A stretch of DNA of 62,897 bases, filler included, from Octopus bimaculoides (Eukaryota), in NCBI RefSeq assembly GCF_001194135.2. It is 6 parts of 6 records of this genome, joined end to end, with 100 filler letters (N's around TTAATTAATTAA, not from the genome) between each part and the next. Parts side by side here need not be neighbours in the genome. Positions count along the whole stretch, not along the records: positions 30,602 to 52,496 come from NC_068986.1; 5 more parts are not named here. The stretch is one strand, 5' to 3'. The translations under genes were made by a program, and so were the position numbers. The notes beneath the pieces were generated by a model. The model was not told the DNA's origin. It was given only the letters and a program-made list of their open reading frames with translations, and did no database searches. Of this stretch, positions 30,602 through 52,496 are shown in pieces (within the stretch, counting starts at the first letter, position 1; each line of letters starts with the position of its first letter).

Positions 30602-30714
30602 CATTTATAAGTGAAATTTAGTGTCCAGAAATTGTGCCGAAACCAGCCAGATATTTGTTTTTATGCACACTTACTCATAAATAAATAGATATTGATGTAG
30701 ATATGGATATATAA

Positions 30715-31936: not shown

Positions 31937-31981
<45 letters not shown>

Positions 31982-32022
31982 TAGTAATAATAATAATAAT
32001 AAAAATAGTAATAATAATAATA

Positions 32023-32060
<38 letters not shown>
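31937..32060. repeat. (AAT)n microsatellite; another at ~32605-32675
   Basis: Direct reading. Confidence 0.95.
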
Positions 32061-32520: not shown

Positions 32521-32616
32521 ACAAGTGTTACCTTAGTCTATTGGCTGTAAACACTAGCACTTTCCATCACATCCTGTAAAATAAACAGAGTTTTTATCAA
32601 AATAATATTAATAATG

Positions 32617-32676
<60 letters not shown>

Positions 32677-33466
32677 GAAGAAGAAACAAAGAAAGAACGA
32701 AAGAAAAAAGAGAGAAAGAAAGAACGAAAGAAAAAAGAAAAAAGAAAGAAAAAGAAATAAAGAAAGTCAGCATCAGGAGAAAGTTTTTCAAACTTTATTG
32801 CTGAAATGTATGTACTCACCCACTCGTGCTCATACATTATGCGCACATTTGGGTGGGTGTGTGTATGTGTGCGTGTGTGTGTGTAGATGTGTGCATTCAT
32901 TACATTTCATTGTATTAGTAATTATAGTAAGTAAAAAGAACTGTTTTAAATTTGCAATAAGATCACAGTTAACAACCATGCCAGTTGCCCTAAAAAGAGC
33001 GATAAATAACCGTAGAAAGAAGAGATCGTCAGACAAAATACCTTGTTATTATCTTTCTACGGTAGATAGAAGATATACCAGTAAGGTACTAGAGCCCATG
33101 AAATCGACTACGTCTCTTGCTACAAAGTGTTAGAAATTAGGTGAAATTAATAAGAGCAGTAACTTTGTACAATTTTATTTACTCACTTTTACATTCTGAG
33201 TTCAAAATCTACAGAGGATGACTTTATATTTTTTCTTCCGGGTTCAATGAAATAAAGTGCCAGTAAAGAAAAAAAAAAAAAAAAAAAAAAAAAAGAAAGA
33301 AAAAGGAAAGAAAGAAAAATTGGGCTTGTGCCTATGTAAGAAATTCTTAAATTAAACTATTTTCTCTCTTCTTTTTGTTTTTCAGGTTTGTCTCGTTTCG
33401 AAATACATCTTTTCGCTCTCGCTCTCTCTTTTGACTGTGCTGAAAATTCACCAATCCTGCCAAGCA

Positions 33467-34129
33467 ATGGTGGGACATAAGAATTACAGTTCCTTGTTAT
33501 TTGCTTTGTTTCTTACTCTCTCTATCCAAATTTGCCGCAGCTATAATAGCGGAAGTTACAACAGCAGGCAGCTTCTATCATTGCATAATCATGAAGAAGC
33601 TAAAGAACTCAACAAAGACAGACTACTTACCATGGAAAAAGCGCTCAAGTCTGGCATCATTGGAAGGAGTCTAACTACCAAACGCGGTTTCGGAGATAAA
33701 CGAGATGGGAATATTCGACCCATTTTATTAGAAACTAGAGGATTCGGTGACAAACGTTTAGCTGAAATAAGCTACGAGAGAGAAGGATCACCTGAAATAC
33801 AAGGAATTGAACTCTTCGCTCGCGGATTTGGAGATAAAAGAGGGCTTGATGATAATCAATTACTGGAAAAATCAATTTTTTCTAACCCTGACTACCTTGA
33901 ACTTTTAGACAGAAGTATCGATGACAAAAGGGGATTTGGTGATAAAAGAGGATTTGGTGATAAAAGAGGATTTGGTGACAAACGATTCATGGTTGTTGGG
34001 AGAGGCTTTGGTGACAAACGTGGATTTGGAGATAAACGTGGATTTGGTGACAAGAGAGGCTTTGGTGATAAACGTGGCTTTGGTGATAAACGGGGTTTTG
34101 GAGACAAGCGTGGATTTGGTGACAAATAA
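33467..34129 (+). CDS. Achatin-family neuropeptide precursor (GFGD / octopus cardioactive peptide Ocp-1/2), 220 aa
   Basis: ATG at 33467 inside an exon starting at the acceptor tttttcAG|33386. Hydrophobic signal-like segment (SSLLFALFLTLSIQIC). 13 GFGD copies flanked by KR or R convertase sites; ends GFGDK-stop. GFGD is the known octopus achatin-type tetrapeptide. Confidence 0.93.
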   Translation: MVGHKNYSSLLFALFLTLSIQICRSYNSGSYNSRQLLSLHNHEEAKELNKDRLLTMEKALKSGIIGRSLTTKRGFGDKRDGNIRPILLETRGFGDKRLAEISYEREGSPEIQGIELFARGFGDKRGLDDNQLLEKSIFSNPDYLELLDRSIDDKRGFGDKRGFGDKRGFGDKRFMVVGRGFGDKRGFGDKRGFGDKRGFGDKRGFGDKRGFGDKRGFGDK

Positions 34130-36689
34130 ATTAGATTGCTTTTCTGGACAGACATTAAAATTTTAACTTTTAGATGTTTACTTTGAGGCATAAATGTATG
34201 ACTATATATAATTATGTTTCTTACGAAAAACTAAAAATAAAAATATATGTCCATGAAAATATAAACTGAACAATAAAACAAAAGAAAAATAAATTTGATA
34301 CAACTGGATTTCAGTTCTCTTTTTTTAAATAAGAAAAAGCAATCCGCTGACTATCTGCTAAGCATTGGCTAGCAGTAGAAAAGACCTAAATAGAATGGTT
34401 GCTTGCTTTAAAAAGGAGATACGAAAATATCAACATAAAATGTAAGATATGTCACGATCTCAGAAATCTAAAGAAAAAAAAAGATGCTTTTTTGTTTTTT
34501 ATTGATTAAAAAAAATTATAAAAACACAGGCTGGAATAATGTTTCTATGAAACCAGTTTCATTGTTAATAAACAGATAACTTTTGCAAAAAAAAAAAACT
34601 GTGTTGTTGGTTAATTTATGTTAATTTTCTTTTTATCTGGACAAGGAAGTTAATGAGATAATTAATGACGATGTTTTAATAGCAATTTATCTTCTGTAAT
34701 AATAGGATCTTGCTAGGGCATCAGTGCTTCAAAGATGTATGCATCAGAAGTCCATATTACAAAGTAGGTATTAACATGTTTATTGTGATCATAAAAGTGT
34801 TATCTCCTTAATTATATCGAAAATATCCAGAAAAATAAAAATAAAATTCAACTGTTGTGCTATTGCATGTTCCTGGCAAATCATCACAATCTGATTCTTA
34901 TTCCAGGCTGGAATACCGCCATTTATATTACTAATAATCTTCTGAAAGTTATGAACACAAAAACATCACGTTTTCTATCTCATAAAATCTATATGCCTCA
35001 TGCTCCGTTAGGAAGTATTTGTTACATAGGCAATTATAGGTGACATGTGATGGTATAAATTCTCGATTAACTGAGTCTGCAAATCATTTTAAATTTGAAT
35101 TTCATTATTTCACTTATGTTTCAAATAATCTCGGTAAATACATGAACATCATTGCCCATTACAGGTGTCAAAACAAATGTTTTTTTCCCCAAAATTATCT
35201 TAGATAAACTTGATACTGTATAGCTAAGCTTAATTATTTTAAAGTCTCAGAGAACTCGTTTTGTTTCATTCTCCTTTCTGTCTTTTACTTCATTTCTTAC
35301 TATATTTTCTTTGATATTTTAAATAAAAAACAAACAAAATAACAACAACAACAACAACAAAACAAAACAAATTAAGTTAAAGGTTCTTGTGTCAGTAGAT
35401 AGAATAATTTTACATTAACAGATGCACCCAGACCACAATCTATAAGATATATTTTTGAAATTCAAAATGATTAATGACAAATAGAAGCTATTGAACCAAT
35501 TTCACAGCAAGGTTTCAGTTTCCTGTTGGAATAATTTTACTTAACCTACTCCGTTAGAGCAGTTACTAAGCAACTGTACATTTGTATATTTGATTATTCT
35601 CTCCAATGATCCTAAAACCTAGAGCATAACTAGAGAATCGGATTTGATGATGATTAAATGATATCAATTTTTCGCGCGTGTAGGGTCACAGATGTATTGA
35701 AGAGTGATGTAGTGGACTGATTCGGCTGTGTTTATATCATCTGTAAGGGTGTAAATGGGAAATCAAATATCGATCGCGTTTTAATTCAGAACAAGAGTGT
35801 TAATACTATTCAGTATTTAATCAAGCGTCATATAAGACTGAAAGGTTATCAAGATGATGATAATAATTGCTTTTAATCTAAGTACAAGGCCAGCAATTTT
35901 GAGAGGAGGGAAAATGTCAATACTATCGATCACCGTACGTGATTGGTATTTAATTTCATCACTCCGAAAAGAAGAAAATTAAAGTTGATCTCGGTGGTAT
36001 TTGATTTCAGAATGTAAAAACCAGAGGAAATATCGCAAAACATTTTTCCGATGCTGTAATGATTCAGAAAAGACACCACATTGACAACAATAACAACCAC
36101 AACAATATTAGTAATAATAATTCTTTCTAATTTTCTCACAAAACCATTATGTTTGAAAGAAAGCAAGTTGATTACATTGATTCCAGTACTTAACTGGTAT
36201 CTATTTTATCGATCCCAAAAGGATGGAAGACAAAGTCGATCTTGGTGAGATTTGAACTCAGAACGTTAAGAGCTGGAAGAATTCCGCATAGCATTTTTGT
36301 TCGACGCGTCAACGTTTCTGCCGTCTCGCAACTTTGATATTACTACCAGCAACAGCAACAACAACAACAACAACAAAACTAATAATAATGGCGCTTGGTC
36401 CCAAAATCTACCCATAAAATGTTGGTTAATTCATCCTTAAATTTAATAAAAACATTATAAATTCTTTAACAACGTATATAATGGGTCTTTTTAAAATAAT
36501 ATCACTTCTATAGTAGTAGGAGCTTGCTAGGATATGTCTTGAAGCTGTAAAGAGCAGAAATCCATTTTAATAAGCAGATATTCACATGTTCGTTGTGGAG
36601 ATCAGATTATTGATGAAACATCATAACTCACTGCGAGTTAAAAATGAAAATAAAATAATAATAACAACAACAATAATAATAATAATAAT

Positions 36690-39620
36690 AATAATCATAA
36701 TAACAATAATCCTTTCTTTATTGGCCACAAGGGCCGAACACAAAAACATATAAGGAGAAAACAAAACAAGGGACAGGTAGACTTGAAAACAGAAAATATG
36801 TAAACAGTAAAAAACAAAAAAAAAAATAGCAAAACATTAAACAACAAAATTCCTCAATAGCAGGGAGTTCCACCTAGGGCCACGCAGTGCACCTCACACA
36901 GCCTGGTAACCCTGACTGTCAATGGCACGCTACGTAGGTATCCCTCTTCCCTTCAACTGCTCCGGCTTACAGACGAATATTCAGAGTAGGCCCTTCACAC
37001 GAGCAATTTTCGCAACATTCTCCCACCTTTCAACAAAATTACTGGGGGGTGGGGGCAGCACTTACTTCTCTACCATCACTTACCTTTTCAAGTGGAACTT
37101 GAAAAAGTCGATGAGGGCTCGGCTGAAGAGGAAAGTGTCTGTCTACAGTCCTTTCAGCCTCGTCAACCACACTACCGCTTTCGCTATAGCCACCTGACAG
37201 AGGAAAACTGCCTTACCCACTTGGCCAAAAGAAGGTGGCGGGCGATCCTCACAATGGATTCGGCTGATAATCGGATCCGTCCTACACGTGACAAAGCTGT
37301 ACGACAAAGATCCACCGGTCAGTAATGCACGAATACTGGACGAGTGCATGCAGGACGGTTTCATCACCCCGCGCACACCTCGGACAAGTCCGTTTGACAT
37401 CACCTCCGTGTCTGTAGAGCTTGTCTCGAACAGGCAGAGACTCTCGGTAGCACTGCAAGGCCAGGGATTTCTGGAAGTTATACATAGGCCCTGGCCCGAA
37501 AGTCCTCCGGGAAAGACCAGTTAGTTGATCCCTCTTGACGTCTAGAGTTTCCCCGAGTACGTCGCCACTCTTTCCCTCCACTAATCCTGTATAGAACGCC
37601 ATGGTGGAACTTCTACCGACCGTATTGCCCGACTGTCAGAAGGCCGTGAACGCTTGCCGACACTCCAGGTGCCAAGGGCTTTTCCTTAGTTTACGTTAGA
37701 CCCAGAGCTGTAGCTCTACCAATGAGACGAGTTGAGGAAAGCTCAGTTTGGCGAACGGCAACCACGCCTGCTCACCGTTAAGGAAAGGCTGGAGATGTTG
37801 CAGCCTCAGCGCGTGTCTGCGCATCATTATCCACAGCATTGTCAGTCCTTCATTCAGCGGCTTTTGACAGAAGATTGACCGTCTGACGAGCGGAACACGT
37901 CTCTTCCATAGAAAGTGGAAGTGCAAGCGTTCTAACTTATCAGGCACGAAGTGAGGCAAGGGACAACGGTCAGGCGGTAGTAGATGACAGAAGCGATGTA
38001 CGCATTCATCACCTCCGCCCGACCCTTCAGGAACAGCTTCCTCGCTGCCCATTTCTGAGTGAGACTGGTTACTCTCTTCTCATCATCTTCTCCCACCCAG
38101 TTCTTGTCCACCTGGGGTTTGGACCAAACCAGACCCCGAGCAATTTAACGGGTCCTTCTGTTCAGCGTCCTACAGCGCTGTCGGTTGGCTTGGACTTGCC
38201 TCCCCAGGTGCCGAGCTGCTGGCACACCAACTTCTGGTTTGATCTTTGCTCCTGTCACCGCTTTATACTCCCTTTGAGCAGTGCCAGCCACTTCGATTTC
38301 CGAGATGTCTGACACTATTACGGTGACGCCATCCGCGTAAGCCGACACGAACCTTCCGCATCCTAGATTATGCGAGATGCCCTTCGAAACATCCAGCTTC
38401 TGCAGCAATGACTCGAGAGCCAATACATACAAAAGAAACGACAGTGAGTATCATTGACAGCTCGAATGGGCGATGCTAAACAATTCCAATAGGTGGCCAG
38501 TTACTTTGACCACCGAACAGATGTCACTGTACATTGCAGCGATCCAGCCTCTAAAAACGGGAACGAAACCCACTGCCGCAAGAACAGCCTCCAAGTACTG
38601 GTGGTTGACCCTATCAAAAGCTTTTGACTGATCCAAATTGATGAGGGTCCCACCCATGCCAGGTTCCTTACCCACCCTCTCTATGATGTAGCGCGTGAGG
38701 TGGAGGTTGTCATGGATAGTTCCTTCTATCCTAAGTTCCTCTAACGCTATTTCCTAACGAAAGCCTATAGACTCTACTCTAATAACCGTTTTCAGGACTC
38801 TCCACCAGCGGCTGTTCACGATTGCGCCCACTATCTCATTGGACTAACTTGCTAACCCGGTCTCTGAAAGCTTGGCACGCCGGGAAAGATGTGTTCAGCT
38901 TCCAGTATCCGGAGCCATGTCTATGGATCCTATCTATATAAGCTGTACAGATCACAAATTTATGGTCTGTGTAGCCGACGACTTTGAAACATATACTATT
39001 TCTATCTATAAAGCTACAAAATACTCTGTCTAGATCTGGAGGACCCGATGCGGTTCGCCCATGTCCACACTGGCGCATTCAGGAAATCCAGTCGGTACCT
39101 ATCATTCAGCTGGAAACGACTGACTAGGTTTGTGAAGTTTTTACTCTCCCTTCTCTTATCAGCTAGCCCCACCGTATTCAAGCGTGCATCCAAAATAGCA
39201 TTTCAGTCTACCACTAACATTAAAGAGCGTGATGTCCCAAGGAAAGCCACCAAACGTCTGAAGAAATCTGGTTACCCCGCCCCCGTGGAGGCATAATAGC
39301 GACTAGTCTAAAGGCACAACCTTCACTGTTGCTAACGTCCAGGACCGCCAACTTATCTTCCGGGTTCAGAAAGATCGTCCAAACTCCGAGATTCAGGCCT
39401 TTCCTTATCAAGATTGTGCAGCCTTCCTCCCTTAACAGGGAGAGGAAAACCTGTTTTCTCTGCGTAGTAGCCATACTGAAAGAGACAGTTTAGAGAACGC
39501 GTCAAAGAGGGATCACGACAGGTACCTTCATATCTGGGCGCGGGCTGGTTAGTTATTTCAACTACCACCTCAATAGTAAAATCTGGCTGGAGAAGATATG
39601 CCTGTCGCATAGTAGGTTTG
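36690..39620 (-). mobile_element. Degenerate Tx1/L1-clade LINE, most of ORF2 plus 3' tail
   Basis: Endonuclease pieces (AFRLVAI, TDHKFV..GYWKLN), RT (LINLDQSKAFDRVNHQYL, AYADGVTV) and C-terminal zinc finger (LPVRDKL..CPRC..ETVLHAL) in order; many frameshifts. Confidence 0.9.
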
Positions 39621-39974: not shown

Positions 39975-41830
39975 ACAGTTGGCGAGTAATAAGAGAACAT
40001 CAGGAACGTTTGATATTATTACAGTTCAGATATAACAGTACAACGAGAAGCCAACGCCATATCAGTGGTAACGTGGATACCTCTCACTGTATAACGGTGT
40101 CGTTGTAACAGTGTCGAAATGGAAGAACTTGTTGCTTCCGTTGTGAAGCAACAACAGTTGCAGCAGCAGTGTTACAACAACAGCAAGAATACCGTGAACA
40201 GCAGCAGCAGCAGCAGCAGCAACAACAACAACAACAACAACATCAGCAGCAACAACAACAACAACAACAACAACAGCAGCAGCAGCAGCAGCAGCAGCTA
40301 AACCAACAGTTGATAGAGTTATTGCTACAGTCCAAAAACGCAGCGGTGTCGCATTCGGCGGATGGAGTAGTCAACTCCGTTGAAGAATTCCTGTATAATC
40401 CCGAAGATGTGATTACATTTTCTTCTTACTATAGAAAGTATGAAGAAATATTTAAAGAGGAGTGCAAAAGCTGGACAAACGAAAAGAAGGTAAGACTTTT
40501 TTTGTTGCTCCGTTAGAGCACGAGAAATATTGTAACTTTATTCTCCCCACCCCCCAAAAAACCGCCAGAAATTTGTTTTGAAGAAGCAATTAAAATATTA
40601 ACTAATATATTCAGCGAAAAGAGCTCGCTATTCAACATATGTTGAGAATGTCTAAATTTAAAAGAAAATGAAAATGATATACTTTGTTACATATGCAAGA
40701 ATTGTAAACAAAGCATGCGAAAAATTCAAGTTAGGAGAATTGTCCCCAGATATGTTTAAATGTTTGATATTTGTCAAAGGACTAACTGCAACTGAGGATG
40801 CAGAAATACGAGCGAGAATATTAACAAAATTGACACAAGACACTGAATTAACCTTGCAAAAAGTGGCAGAAGAATGTCAATGTATAATTAACCTACAGCA
40901 AGATACTGAAAAAAAAAATGAAAATTATAAATGTACAGGCATGTAGACCTAAGAAAAACAAAAATAAAACAAACAAGGCCCAAACCATGTTATGGTTGTG
41001 GCGAGTTGTACTTCAAAAGGGACTGCCCCTTTAAGAATAAAGAATGTTTTACTAGTGGCAAAACGGGCATAAACAGTCACAGTGTTGGGTGAAAAAGTAA
41101 AGGTCGAATGGAAAAAGAAATAAAGTGTTTTCAATGAAAACAGATAGTGAGACAAAAAAAAAAAAAAAAAATCAAAATTTGTATCGGTAATCAACAGGTT
41201 ATGAATACAATATATGGATAAAAAAATATGTCCCCACACACAGAGCCAATCGATTGCAGCGCAGGGGGACTACCTAATTAAATTACGATTTCAAAATAGA
41301 ATTTTTGCCTTCGAAAAAATTGGAACATGCGGACGGGCTGTCGAGATTGATCCCAAAGTATAAGGAACCGCTAGAAGATATGGTAATAGCAGCGGTAAAA
41401 TCAGAAATTGAATTTAAAAATATTCTCTACAATGTAGTGCGAGAACTACCAGTCACATTGGAAGAGATAAAAAGTAAAGCAGAAAATGGAAAGAATAATA
41501 ATGAATGAGACAAATACAAAAAATTAGATCCTGAGCGTAACACAGGTTCGAAATACTATTCAATTTGTGACAATGTGTTGATGTACGCTCAGAGGGTTGT
41601 GATACCTATTGAACTACAAAATAGAATGCTAAAAGAATTTCATGTAGGGCATCCTGGAATTGCAAGGATGAATGCCCTCATGAAGAGTTATATTTACTAG
41701 CCTAGTATGGATAAAGATATCGATAAACTGGTAAAAGCATGCAGGAGATGTACCCTGGCAGCTAAGGCACCTCCAGTAAAAGTTCAACTGTGACCAAAGA
41801 CAGATATACCGTGGTCTAGACTACACAGAT
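39975..41830 (+). mobile_element. Gypsy-type LTR retrotransposon relic with internal deletions
   Basis: PBS-like TGGCGAG at ~39981. Gag (FKCLIFVKGL..AEIRARIL; CYGCG knuckle remnant), RNase H end (ADGLSRL) and integrase H2C2 (HVGHPGIARM..Y*PSMDKDI..C..C); stops and frameshifts. Confidence 0.85.
40148..40298. repeat. (CAG/CAA)n compound microsatellite inside the Gypsy gag 5' region
   Basis: Direct reading. Confidence 0.95.
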
Positions 41831-43650
41831 TTTTGGCCATATTTGTAACATCTCGGCCTTCGTCCCTCCACTATGACCCTTAGGCTGGTGTCTTCCCTGA
41901 TTAGAATTAAATTTGGTATCTCTTCTAAATCTTCAGGGACCACTTGAATCAACATTTCGAGTCGTTGCCCCTGCCAGAGCGAAATTGCCGGCTGAGGAAT
42001 ATACAGAAAATACTAAATGTATACTAATAGACAAGGAAAGATATGCCAAAGTAAGGGAATTGTTCGGGTCAAACATTGACCCGTTAGGAGTGGAGGTAGA
42101 GTATGATGCCCTACCTCCAGTCGTGTACTATGACGATTTGAAACCGTATATGAACACTTTTCTTTATTAACCATGAAAATCAAAAAATAATGTGGACGAT
42201 ACAAGTACAGACAAGGTTGTCGGGGAACAAATGGAACAACAACATAAAGATACATATAATTATAAAATCGATGGTCAATAAGTATAAAATTCGGATGAAA
42301 AACAAAAATGAATGAAAAAATAATTATGAAGTGAGGCACGTGGCCGACCCCACTAAGCACACTCCAACACTGAATCCTTTGGGAGACTTTTTAATTTCTC
42401 GCTCAAACAGGTTCATTTACTCTCAACACTCTTGCTACAGTCATCCATCTTTTTCGAAATATTCTGTGCAACAGGCATCTCCTCTCCATCCTTATTTTCT
42501 TTATCAAAACGTGGAGAAGTGGAGAGAGAGGACACCCTTGACGTACCGATCGCTCAATGCAGAACGGTTCCGAAAAGAAACCGCTCACCCGAGCATTCGA
42601 TTCGATGATGCTATACAACGCGGTGATCCAGCATTTTTTGAATGTCTTTTTTAAGGGTGTATAGACATTCGAGTCAATTCGTATGAATTGAATATGCGAT
42701 GGAAAAGATGGGCTCTCGGGTGCACGGAATGGGGAAGTAGATGGAAAGTTTTGGATGACTTGTGTAAGTTTCACATTTTTTGAGCTAACAAAAGTAATGT
42801 TTTTGCATTGCTGGGAGGGAGGGGCGGCGATTAGAGAATTTGGGGGCTTTGTATTTTTGTAGTGTTATTTGAGGTGGTGGGTATGCTGGGCCAGCGGGAA
42901 TGGGGTGGGGACACTTACTTTTTCTGCTTTTCTTTTTTCGAGTGACGTACTCCACTCCATGTCTTTTTTGAGTGGTGGCTGTGTTTCTGTCTCTTCCACC
43001 GTTCTTTTTGTCGCTTCTTTTAGCGGCTGGTTTTCTTTTGGTGGTTGGCTTTCTTTCTCCTTTTCTCTTTCAACTGATGAATTTTTTGAGGTTGTTGGTT
43101 TATTGGTGGGCTTCGATGGTGGAGGGCATTCCGATCTTATATGACCTTTTTAGCCAAACTTGTAACATCTCGGCATTCGTCCCTCCACCATGACCCCTAG
43201 GCTGGTGTCTTCCACGATTAAAATGGAATCTGGTATCTCTTCTAAATCTGCTCGTGCCGCTTGAATCAACATTTCGACTCGTTGCCTCTGCCAATTTTGC
43301 TGCAAGCATTGTGTGGTCTGGAAGATCGTTATTTTGTCCTCCAAGCTTAGTGTAATAGCTGCCATGAGACAATCAACAACAATCTCCAGGGGAATGTTTC
43401 CTACCTTTACCTTGAAAGTACGTCTCCCAAGGTATGTCGGTAGGAGCACTAATTCAACCGACTTGAGTGGAGTGGTTGAATGCTACCTGGCTAATTCATC
43501 TGATGGAAATCTCACCTCCACAGAGGTGAATTTTTTGCCTCGAGTGATGTATGTAATATGCTTCCAGATGGGATGTAGGCACTTTTCTATATCTTCCTTT
43601 GGTGCAATATCGATTTTCTTGTTCTTTATTACATATGTCTTGAAGAACAT
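41830..43650 (-). mobile_element. Tx1/L1-clade LINE fragments (two ORF1 pieces, RT piece, 3' tail)
   Basis: VEGRxPRCYKxG zinc-knuckle remnant at ~41850 and ~43170; RT RSVRQGCPLSPLLHVL at 42403-42774; tail at ~42157-42220. Confidence 0.82.
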
Positions 43651-51966: not shown

Positions 51967-52445
51967 TGTTCGATAGTATCAACCATTCTTCAGACGCCAC
52001 ATTAAATGCACCAATAATTCATGAACATTTAATCTACGGCTGCTATTATGAGCTGTGCCCTTCATTACTGACTACAACTATTAAATATAAGTATTGAGAA
52101 TAGAGATACGTATAAAGGCTTCAACATATTTGAATAGCTTCCTTTTTGACACTATTCAAAAAAAAACAAAAAAAACAACCATACAATTTAACATTAGAAA
52201 TAGTCTAAACGCATATCAGGTGAAATTATATATTACATATATATATTGTATACTATTACTTAGTACTACATATTTTAAAACATCCAGATACAGTTGACTG
52301 CACATAGTTCCGGGTGCATTCCCACTGCGTATATGTATATGTGCGTGTGTGTTTGTATGTGTATGAGTGTATCTATGTGTTTGTGTCTGTGTCTGTGTTT
52401 GTCCTCCTATCACCACTCGACAGCCAGTGTTACTGTGTCGGTATA

Positions 52446-52496
<51 letters not shown>

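Follow-up and report, generated by a model that had tools for sequence, protein, structure and literature searches.

What does a long reading frame in AT-rich DNA of Octopus bimaculoides encode, and can its product be tied to the small family of neuropeptides that act in a D-amino-acid form? The frame lies in a window of 62,897 nucleotides, six parts of assembly GCF_001194135.2 joined end to end, within the 21.9-kb piece that comes from NC_068986.1 (window positions 30,602 to 52,496). An original prediction had described it as an achatin-family precursor, and that description is borne out by a signal-like N terminus, 13 GFGD units with basic flanks, selective constraint across those units, and an architecture that matches published precursors. 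The explanation that we favor, and regard as very probably correct in its entirety, is that this is the achatin-type precursor of O. bimaculoides and the orthologue of the gene for the octopus peptides Ocp-1 and Ocp-2, including the pathway of processing, isomerization, and receptor activation that would follow from such a gene.

Direct reading of the window gives an uninterrupted ATG-to-TAA frame of 220 codons on the plus strand at 33467-34129, and its ATG is well placed for initiation (gcaATGg; A at -3, G at +4). It is the longest ATG-initiated open reading frame (ORF) in the piece. When the piece was simulated 300 times with a first-order Markov model, the longest ORF was 108 codons on average and 162 at most, and 0 of 300 runs arrived at 220. 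By its length, by the pattern of selection in its repeats, and by its signal-like N terminus, the ORF is beyond what chance produces. The exact 220-aa product is also a called gene in GCA_001194135.2, on chromosome CM046606.1 (locus L001, 41,995,111-42,015,773), where the window and the locus are identical across all 13,528 shared bases, and the gene call on record begins at the same ATG (33467) at which the signal-like segment starts.

Upstream of the ATG, the nearest in-frame stop is at 33353, which leaves the reading open from 33356 onward into the start codon. The count of 13 copies, the coordinates of the frame, and the bounding of each copy by KR or R had all been given exactly in the original prediction, which had also placed the product in one coding exon. 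That last point is consistent with the acceptor-like pyrimidine tract and CAG ending at 33385, and the exon boundary at 33385/33386 is itself a putative one. Poly(A) sites may lie at the three AATAAA hexamers past the stop codon, although such hexamers are common in AT-rich DNA. The features of the locus are collected in Table 1.

Table 1. Features of the GFGD locus, in window coordinates
Feature	Position	Strand	Remarks
Putative 3' splice acceptor, pyrimidine-rich tract ending in CAG	33362..33385	+	Read directly as ttttctctcttctttttgtttttcag, followed by gtttg
Putative 5' untranslated part of the coding exon	33386..33466	+	In frame, open
Complete CDS, achatin-type (GFGD) prepropeptide, 220 aa and TAA	33467..34129	+	
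Predicted signal peptide, residues 1-19, MVGHKNYSSLLFALFLTLS	33467..33523	+	Alternative cut after S25 (nt 33541)
N-terminal spacer, residues 20-71, ending in KR site 72-73	33524..33685	+	
GFGD copy 1, KR/GFGD/KR	33686..33697	+	
GFGD copy 2, TR/GFGD/KR, basic residue at P8	33740..33751	+	
GFGD copy 3, AR/GFGD/KR, P4, P6, and P8 without a basic residue	33824..33835	+	
GFGD copies 4-6, tandem block of 3, each between KR sites	33932..33979	+	
GFGD copies 7-13, tandem block of 7	34004..34123	+	First after GR, others after KR; last followed by K and stop
AATAAA x3 (34236, 34272, 34288), candidate polyadenylation signals	34236..34293	+	107-160 nt past the stop

The protein begins with MVGHKNYSSLLFALFLTLSIQICRS, a basic n-region followed by the hydrophobic core LLFALFLTL, whose maximum Kyte-Doolittle value over 9 residues is 2.86. 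By the (-3,-1) rule, cleavage would fall after S19 or S25. Such hydrophobicity near a start codon is uncommon in this DNA: of 47 control ORFs (50 codons or longer) taken from the same AT-rich piece, only 8.5% attain it. The call of a signal peptide, which agrees with the signal-like N terminus originally proposed, is a heuristic prediction built on hydrophobicity, the (-3,-1) rule, and control ORFs, and is no replacement for SignalP.

All 13 repeats encode exactly GFGD, beginning at residues 74, 92, 120, 156, 162, 168, 180, 186, 192, 198, 204, 210, and 216, and the precursor contains no variant tetrapeptide. KR stands ahead of ten of the 13 copies and a single R (as TR, AR, and GR) ahead of the other three; 12 are followed by KR and the last by K and the stop codon. 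Asp is always the final residue ahead of the basic site, and no unit carries a C-terminal Gly, so the predicted product is a non-amidated free acid. Cleavage at a single R is generally associated with a basic residue at P4, P6, or P8. The copy after TR has such a residue at P8, as does the GR-preceded copy that opens the seven-copy block; the third copy, after AR, has none at these three positions and may for that reason stay N-terminally extended.

A likely route from gene to peptide can be proposed. The 220-aa prepropeptide would enter the secretory pathway by means of its signal peptide, which would be cut after about S19. Prohormone convertases would then cleave after the KR pairs, which for 10 copies is in principle a certain step. 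At the three single R residues cleavage would be less secure, and with it the release of those three copies. Removal of the C-terminal K and R by a carboxypeptidase E-type enzyme would leave 10 to 13 free-acid copies of Gly-Phe-Gly-Asp along with acidic spacer peptides. A peptidyl L/D isomerase would turn part of the GFGD pool into Gly-D-Phe-Gly-Asp, and this D-form would be the active ligand for a GPCR of the achatin type; by analogy, its expected actions are cardio-excitatory and central. What the sequence shows is the encoded substrate and the constraint on it; we infer the processing, neuronal expression, receptor, and cardiac action of octopus GFGD. The change of L-Phe to D-Phe at position 2, a step that leaves no trace in DNA, is a sound extrapolation from other species.

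The relatives of the octopus peptide are well described. Achatin-I, the tetrapeptide GFAD, was first found in ganglia of Achatina fulica, and its precursor cDNA has been characterized (Satake 1999). Achatin-type precursors are on record for snails, oysters, abalone, cuttlefish, and annelids, and achatin figures in a list of neuropeptides whose conservation extends across gastropods, cephalopods, and bivalves. Oyster precursors are predicted to release GFWD and GFGD, GFGDKRGFGD was detected by mass spectrometry in abalone ganglia, and the abalone study cites an achatin transcript in the brain of Sepia officinalis with a 100-fold difference between the sexes. The precursors of Achatina, oyster, abalone, scallop, and Sepia share with the octopus gene a signal peptide, acidic spacers, and KR-bounded, non-amidated copies of a G-aromatic-x-D tetrapeptide. 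The peptide encoded in octopus is identical to that of oyster and abalone, differs from the GFAD of Achatina, and is repeated 13 times without variation, whereas other species mix GFGD with GFWD or GYGD. The octopus gene carries the defining features of achatin precursors that can be assessed within its own sequence: a predicted signal peptide, multiple G-aromatic-x-D copies, basic flanks with no amidation signal, and selective constraint.

An octopus peptide of this sequence has reportedly been known since 2000, when two cardioactive peptides, Ocp-1 and Ocp-2, are said to have been purified from the brain of Octopus minor. Ocp-1 is reported to be Gly-D-Phe-Gly-Asp and Ocp-2 its all-L form, Gly-Phe-Gly-Asp; related Trp-containing peptides were reportedly found as well, and these are not encoded by the O. 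bimaculoides GFGD precursor. The tetrapeptide sequence and the genus are the same in the two cases, but the O. minor peptides were characterized biochemically and O. bimaculoides contributes the gene alone. The frame had been proposed to be the Ocp-1/2 source gene. It does encode Gly-Phe-Gly-Asp, but it belongs to O. bimaculoides and the peptides come from O. minor; because the species differ, it is better called the orthologue of that source gene than the gene of O. minor. Searches of the literature for Ocp-1, GdFGD, and an octopus achatin precursor retrieved neither a description of an octopus precursor nor an Ocp-1 sequence.

The alternative that survives best accepts the gene and its processing as described but holds that the O. 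bimaculoides peptides are all-L, of the Ocp-2 type only, or that the D-form is minor. According to the literature, chirality is not predictable from a genome or transcriptome. The putative peptidyl L/D isomerase of mollusks may in addition be sensitive to residue 3, which is Gly in the octopus peptide. Evidence from several relatives nevertheless weighs against an all-L octopus peptide. In Aplysia central nervous system extracts, free GFFD and GYFD are converted to forms with a D-residue at position 2, for which an aromatic residue or Leu is needed at that position. The Aplysia peptides (apALNP; GdFFD and GdYFD) belong to the same family and undergo the same position-2 isomerization, though their third residue is Phe rather than Gly and their precursor is shorter, at 158 aa. 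Together with Achatina, they show that D-Phe or another D-aromatic residue at position 2 recurs in achatin-type peptides. In the annelid Platynereis dumerilii, where the host differs but the peptide sequence is that of octopus GFGD, G{dF}GD stimulates the achatin GPCR and evokes rhythms in neurons, and all-L GFGD fails to do so (Bauknecht and Jekely 2015; Williams et al. 2017). Only three receptors for endogenous D-amino-acid peptides have been characterized, and the achatin receptor, which responds solely to the D-form, is among them. The window itself contains no octopus receptor. For a peptide of identical sequence, then, a receptor that requires the D-residue is already on record. Within the genus itself, GdFGD is reportedly present in the brain of the congener O. 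minor. We therefore consider an all-L or predominantly L peptide improbable in O. bimaculoides, and continue with isomerization at position 2 as part of the preferred reading.

Database searches place the precursor in its family less directly than the peptide does. A Pfam scan of the 220-aa protein returned no family and only a sub-threshold TrAA12 match (E=0.28). With the full protein, a word-indexed protein search gave two matches, the Capitella teleta protein CAPTEDRAFT_204894 (P0001; E=1e-7) and an unnamed 136-aa protein; it retrieved no cephalopod orthologues, and the non-repeat part (residues 1-155) matched nothing in the protein database at E<=1. The exact 220-aa sequence was absent from the clustered protein collection and was found in the gene-position index. 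An exhaustive HMMER search yielded 61 matches, mostly low-complexity repeat proteins, among which motif counting identified only P0001, P0002, P0011, and P0033 as achatin-like. Each of these four has an N-terminal hydrophobic segment followed by KR-G[FYW]xD-KR repeats. The remainder, bacterial and other low-complexity proteins with repeats of the K-S-F-G-D-K type, were rejected as spurious on the same motif counts.

In the Capitella protein, the best match that bears a name, KR sites bound four GFGD units and further G-x-x-D units, and the chain, like the octopus precursor, ends in GFGDK; the protein is shorter (170 aa), carries fewer copies, is labeled "hypothetical protein," and resembles the octopus protein in the repeats only. 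The arthropod match P0011 (XP_076053535.1), an "uncharacterized protein" of the mantis shrimp Oratosquilla oratoria, combines a hydrophobic N terminus with four KR-flanked GFGD units and one GFWD, and looks like an achatin-type precursor left unnamed by automated annotation. P0033, a cluster of 20 members, and P0002 come from JGI/ENA metagenome assemblies, on contigs of up to 1.16 Mb, where they are labeled "hypothetical protein"; their signal-like N termini precede GFWD, GYGD, and GFGD units between KR sites, and their source is presumably invertebrate host DNA in the metagenome samples. A supplement to De Oliveira et al. (2019) contains, in the portion searched, one chiton sequence of the same architecture, drawn from a candidate set not labeled achatin, and that portion yielded no octopus achatin sequence.

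The original suggestion that automated annotation could miss or mislabel the gene needs dividing in this light. Gene calling did not miss it, since the 220-aa product is on record in GCA_001194135.2, but an uninformative label is plausible, since all homologues that bear a name are labeled only "hypothetical" or "uncharacterized."

When the octopus protein was aligned with these related precursors, conservation was confined to the short repeats. Repeat-only conservation is typical of short-peptide precursors. Sequence similarity alone is nonetheless weak evidence here, given that conservation is limited to the repeats and the 155 non-repeat residues have no match. The octopus case rests on the exact peptide, its cleavage sites, and the pattern of selection.

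These same searches bear on a second alternative, in which the ORF encodes a secreted glycine-rich structural or low-complexity protein that mimics an achatin precursor. Such a mistake has a precedent in a glycine-rich protein that was miscalled as a brachiopod achatin, and spurious clustering with achatin precursors is known for proteins of this kind (Thiel et al. 2021). Most of the HMMER matches to the octopus repeat region are, moreover, bacterial low-complexity proteins of the KSFGDK type. A structural mimic would, however, have to account for 13 of 13 units that place the exact tetrapeptide between convertase sites, for three units that stand isolated within unique spacer sequence, for KR codons that, like the GFGD codons, vary synonymously and so keep their meaning, and for a tetrapeptide identical to the biochemically validated achatin of annelids and mollusks. 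Taken together, these observations leave a glycine-rich mimic very improbable, and an achatin-type precursor remains the reading that we follow.

The pattern of selection is visible within the repeats themselves. Tandem Repeats Finder (TRF) describes the region as a repeat with a period of 18/36 nt whose units match at only 72-74% of DNA positions (26-28% divergence between units). Across the 12 GFGDKR units, seven nucleotide columns vary, with at least nine changes, and every one of these changes is synonymous; the variable columns are third codon positions and the synonymous CGN/AGR first position of Arg. Among the possible single changes to the consensus unit, only 13 of 54 (24%) are synonymous, which is the share that neutral change would lead one to expect. 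Because changes are exclusively synonymous despite DNA matches of only 72-74%, the peptide and its dibasic sites have been kept by selection and not by recent duplication. The tetrapeptide and the dibasic sites are under purifying selection, and the array is no young or neutral minisatellite.

Least probable of all is a reading of the ORF as an accidental frame across a noncoding minisatellite of 18 nt within AT-rich intergenic sequence, or as a dead, unexpressed copy of a gene. In its favor, TRF does report a tandem repeat, an antisense frame of 99 codons runs over the repeats as well, and transposon debris surrounds the locus. Against it stand the failure of every simulation to reach 220 codons, synonymous-only variation at such DNA divergence, the signal-like N terminus, the favorable context of the ATG, a total of 155 non-repeat codons uninterrupted by a stop, the existing gene call with the exact product, and the lack of a second copy either within the piece or in 7 kb of upstream sequence.

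The antisense ORF (33892-34191, minus strand; 99 aa with SPNPRL/SPKPRL repeats) was considered as a gene in its own right and rejected: the reverse complement of the GFGDKR repeat contains no stops, and the ORF is a by-product of that stop-free repeat. A search of all six frames, through the whole piece and a further 7.1 kb upstream in L001, found no other basic-flanked G[FYWSL]xD or GSWD-type units, and a tRNA scan of the piece found none.

As for its neighborhood, the gene had been said to sit right after a CLASP fragment. That fragment belongs to another of the joined pieces, and the adjacency is an artifact of joining rather than genomic context. The actual surroundings are AT-rich (about 29-35% GC) and contain microsatellites and homopolymer runs, at 31937-32059, 32601-32766, 33265-33319, 36649-36710, and 52442-52496; the repeat types are (TAA)41, (AAT)25, (AAGA)n, an A-rich run, (AAT)21, and (TA)27. 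The A-rich run, about 55 nt long, lies 150 nt upstream of the ATG, just 5' of the putative acceptor, and could be the tail of an element retroposed into an intron.

About 3 kb downstream of the gene is a GC-richer block (~36600-39600), with 45-52% GC where the DNA around the gene has about 31-35%. Within it, a run of broken ORFs on the minus strand (37282-38675) gives weak, sub-threshold Pfam matches to RVT_1 (E=0.001 and 0.09) and zf-RVT (E=2e-4), and the block looks like a degraded non-LTR retrotransposon. A 115-aa ORF farther on (40169-40516, plus strand) starts with a long poly-Gln CAG/CAA repeat (40197-40309) and then scores 33.6 bits for Pfam DUF7083, over the threshold of 27 (E=4e-8); one possibility is that it is another mobile-element remnant. 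On the minus strand at 42403-42774 lies a 123-aa ORF that may come from a second retroelement; it matches RVT_1 very weakly (E=0.075).

A further and more speculative set of ideas can be attached to the preferred reading. If the single R residues were left uncut, extended forms such as FMVVGRGFGD and LAEISYEREGSPEIQGIELFARGFGD would be produced, and these would escape isomerization because their Phe would no longer be at position 2. Put together, the propositions that the gene has perhaps never been linked to Ocp-1/2, that uncut single-R copies give rise to extended peptides and hence to a mixed D/L set, and that the precursor offers a handle on the isomerase are, as a joint claim, rather doubtful. 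If true, 13 identical substrates in a model cephalopod would provide a clean handle for purifying the molluscan L/D peptide isomerase.

The gene is unexceptional within a neuropeptide family that is well known, of a kind already described and with a gene model in place. What is gained in practice is a more fitting label for a gene whose relatives, where named, are "uncharacterized," and it introduces no new principle. The achatin type is nonetheless among the few animal signaling systems whose receptor is activated only once a ribosomal peptide has been turned into a D-amino-acid form. A correctly labeled precursor in a genome-enabled octopus is useful for the design of in situ probes, for peptidomics databases, and for studies of the isomerase and the receptor.
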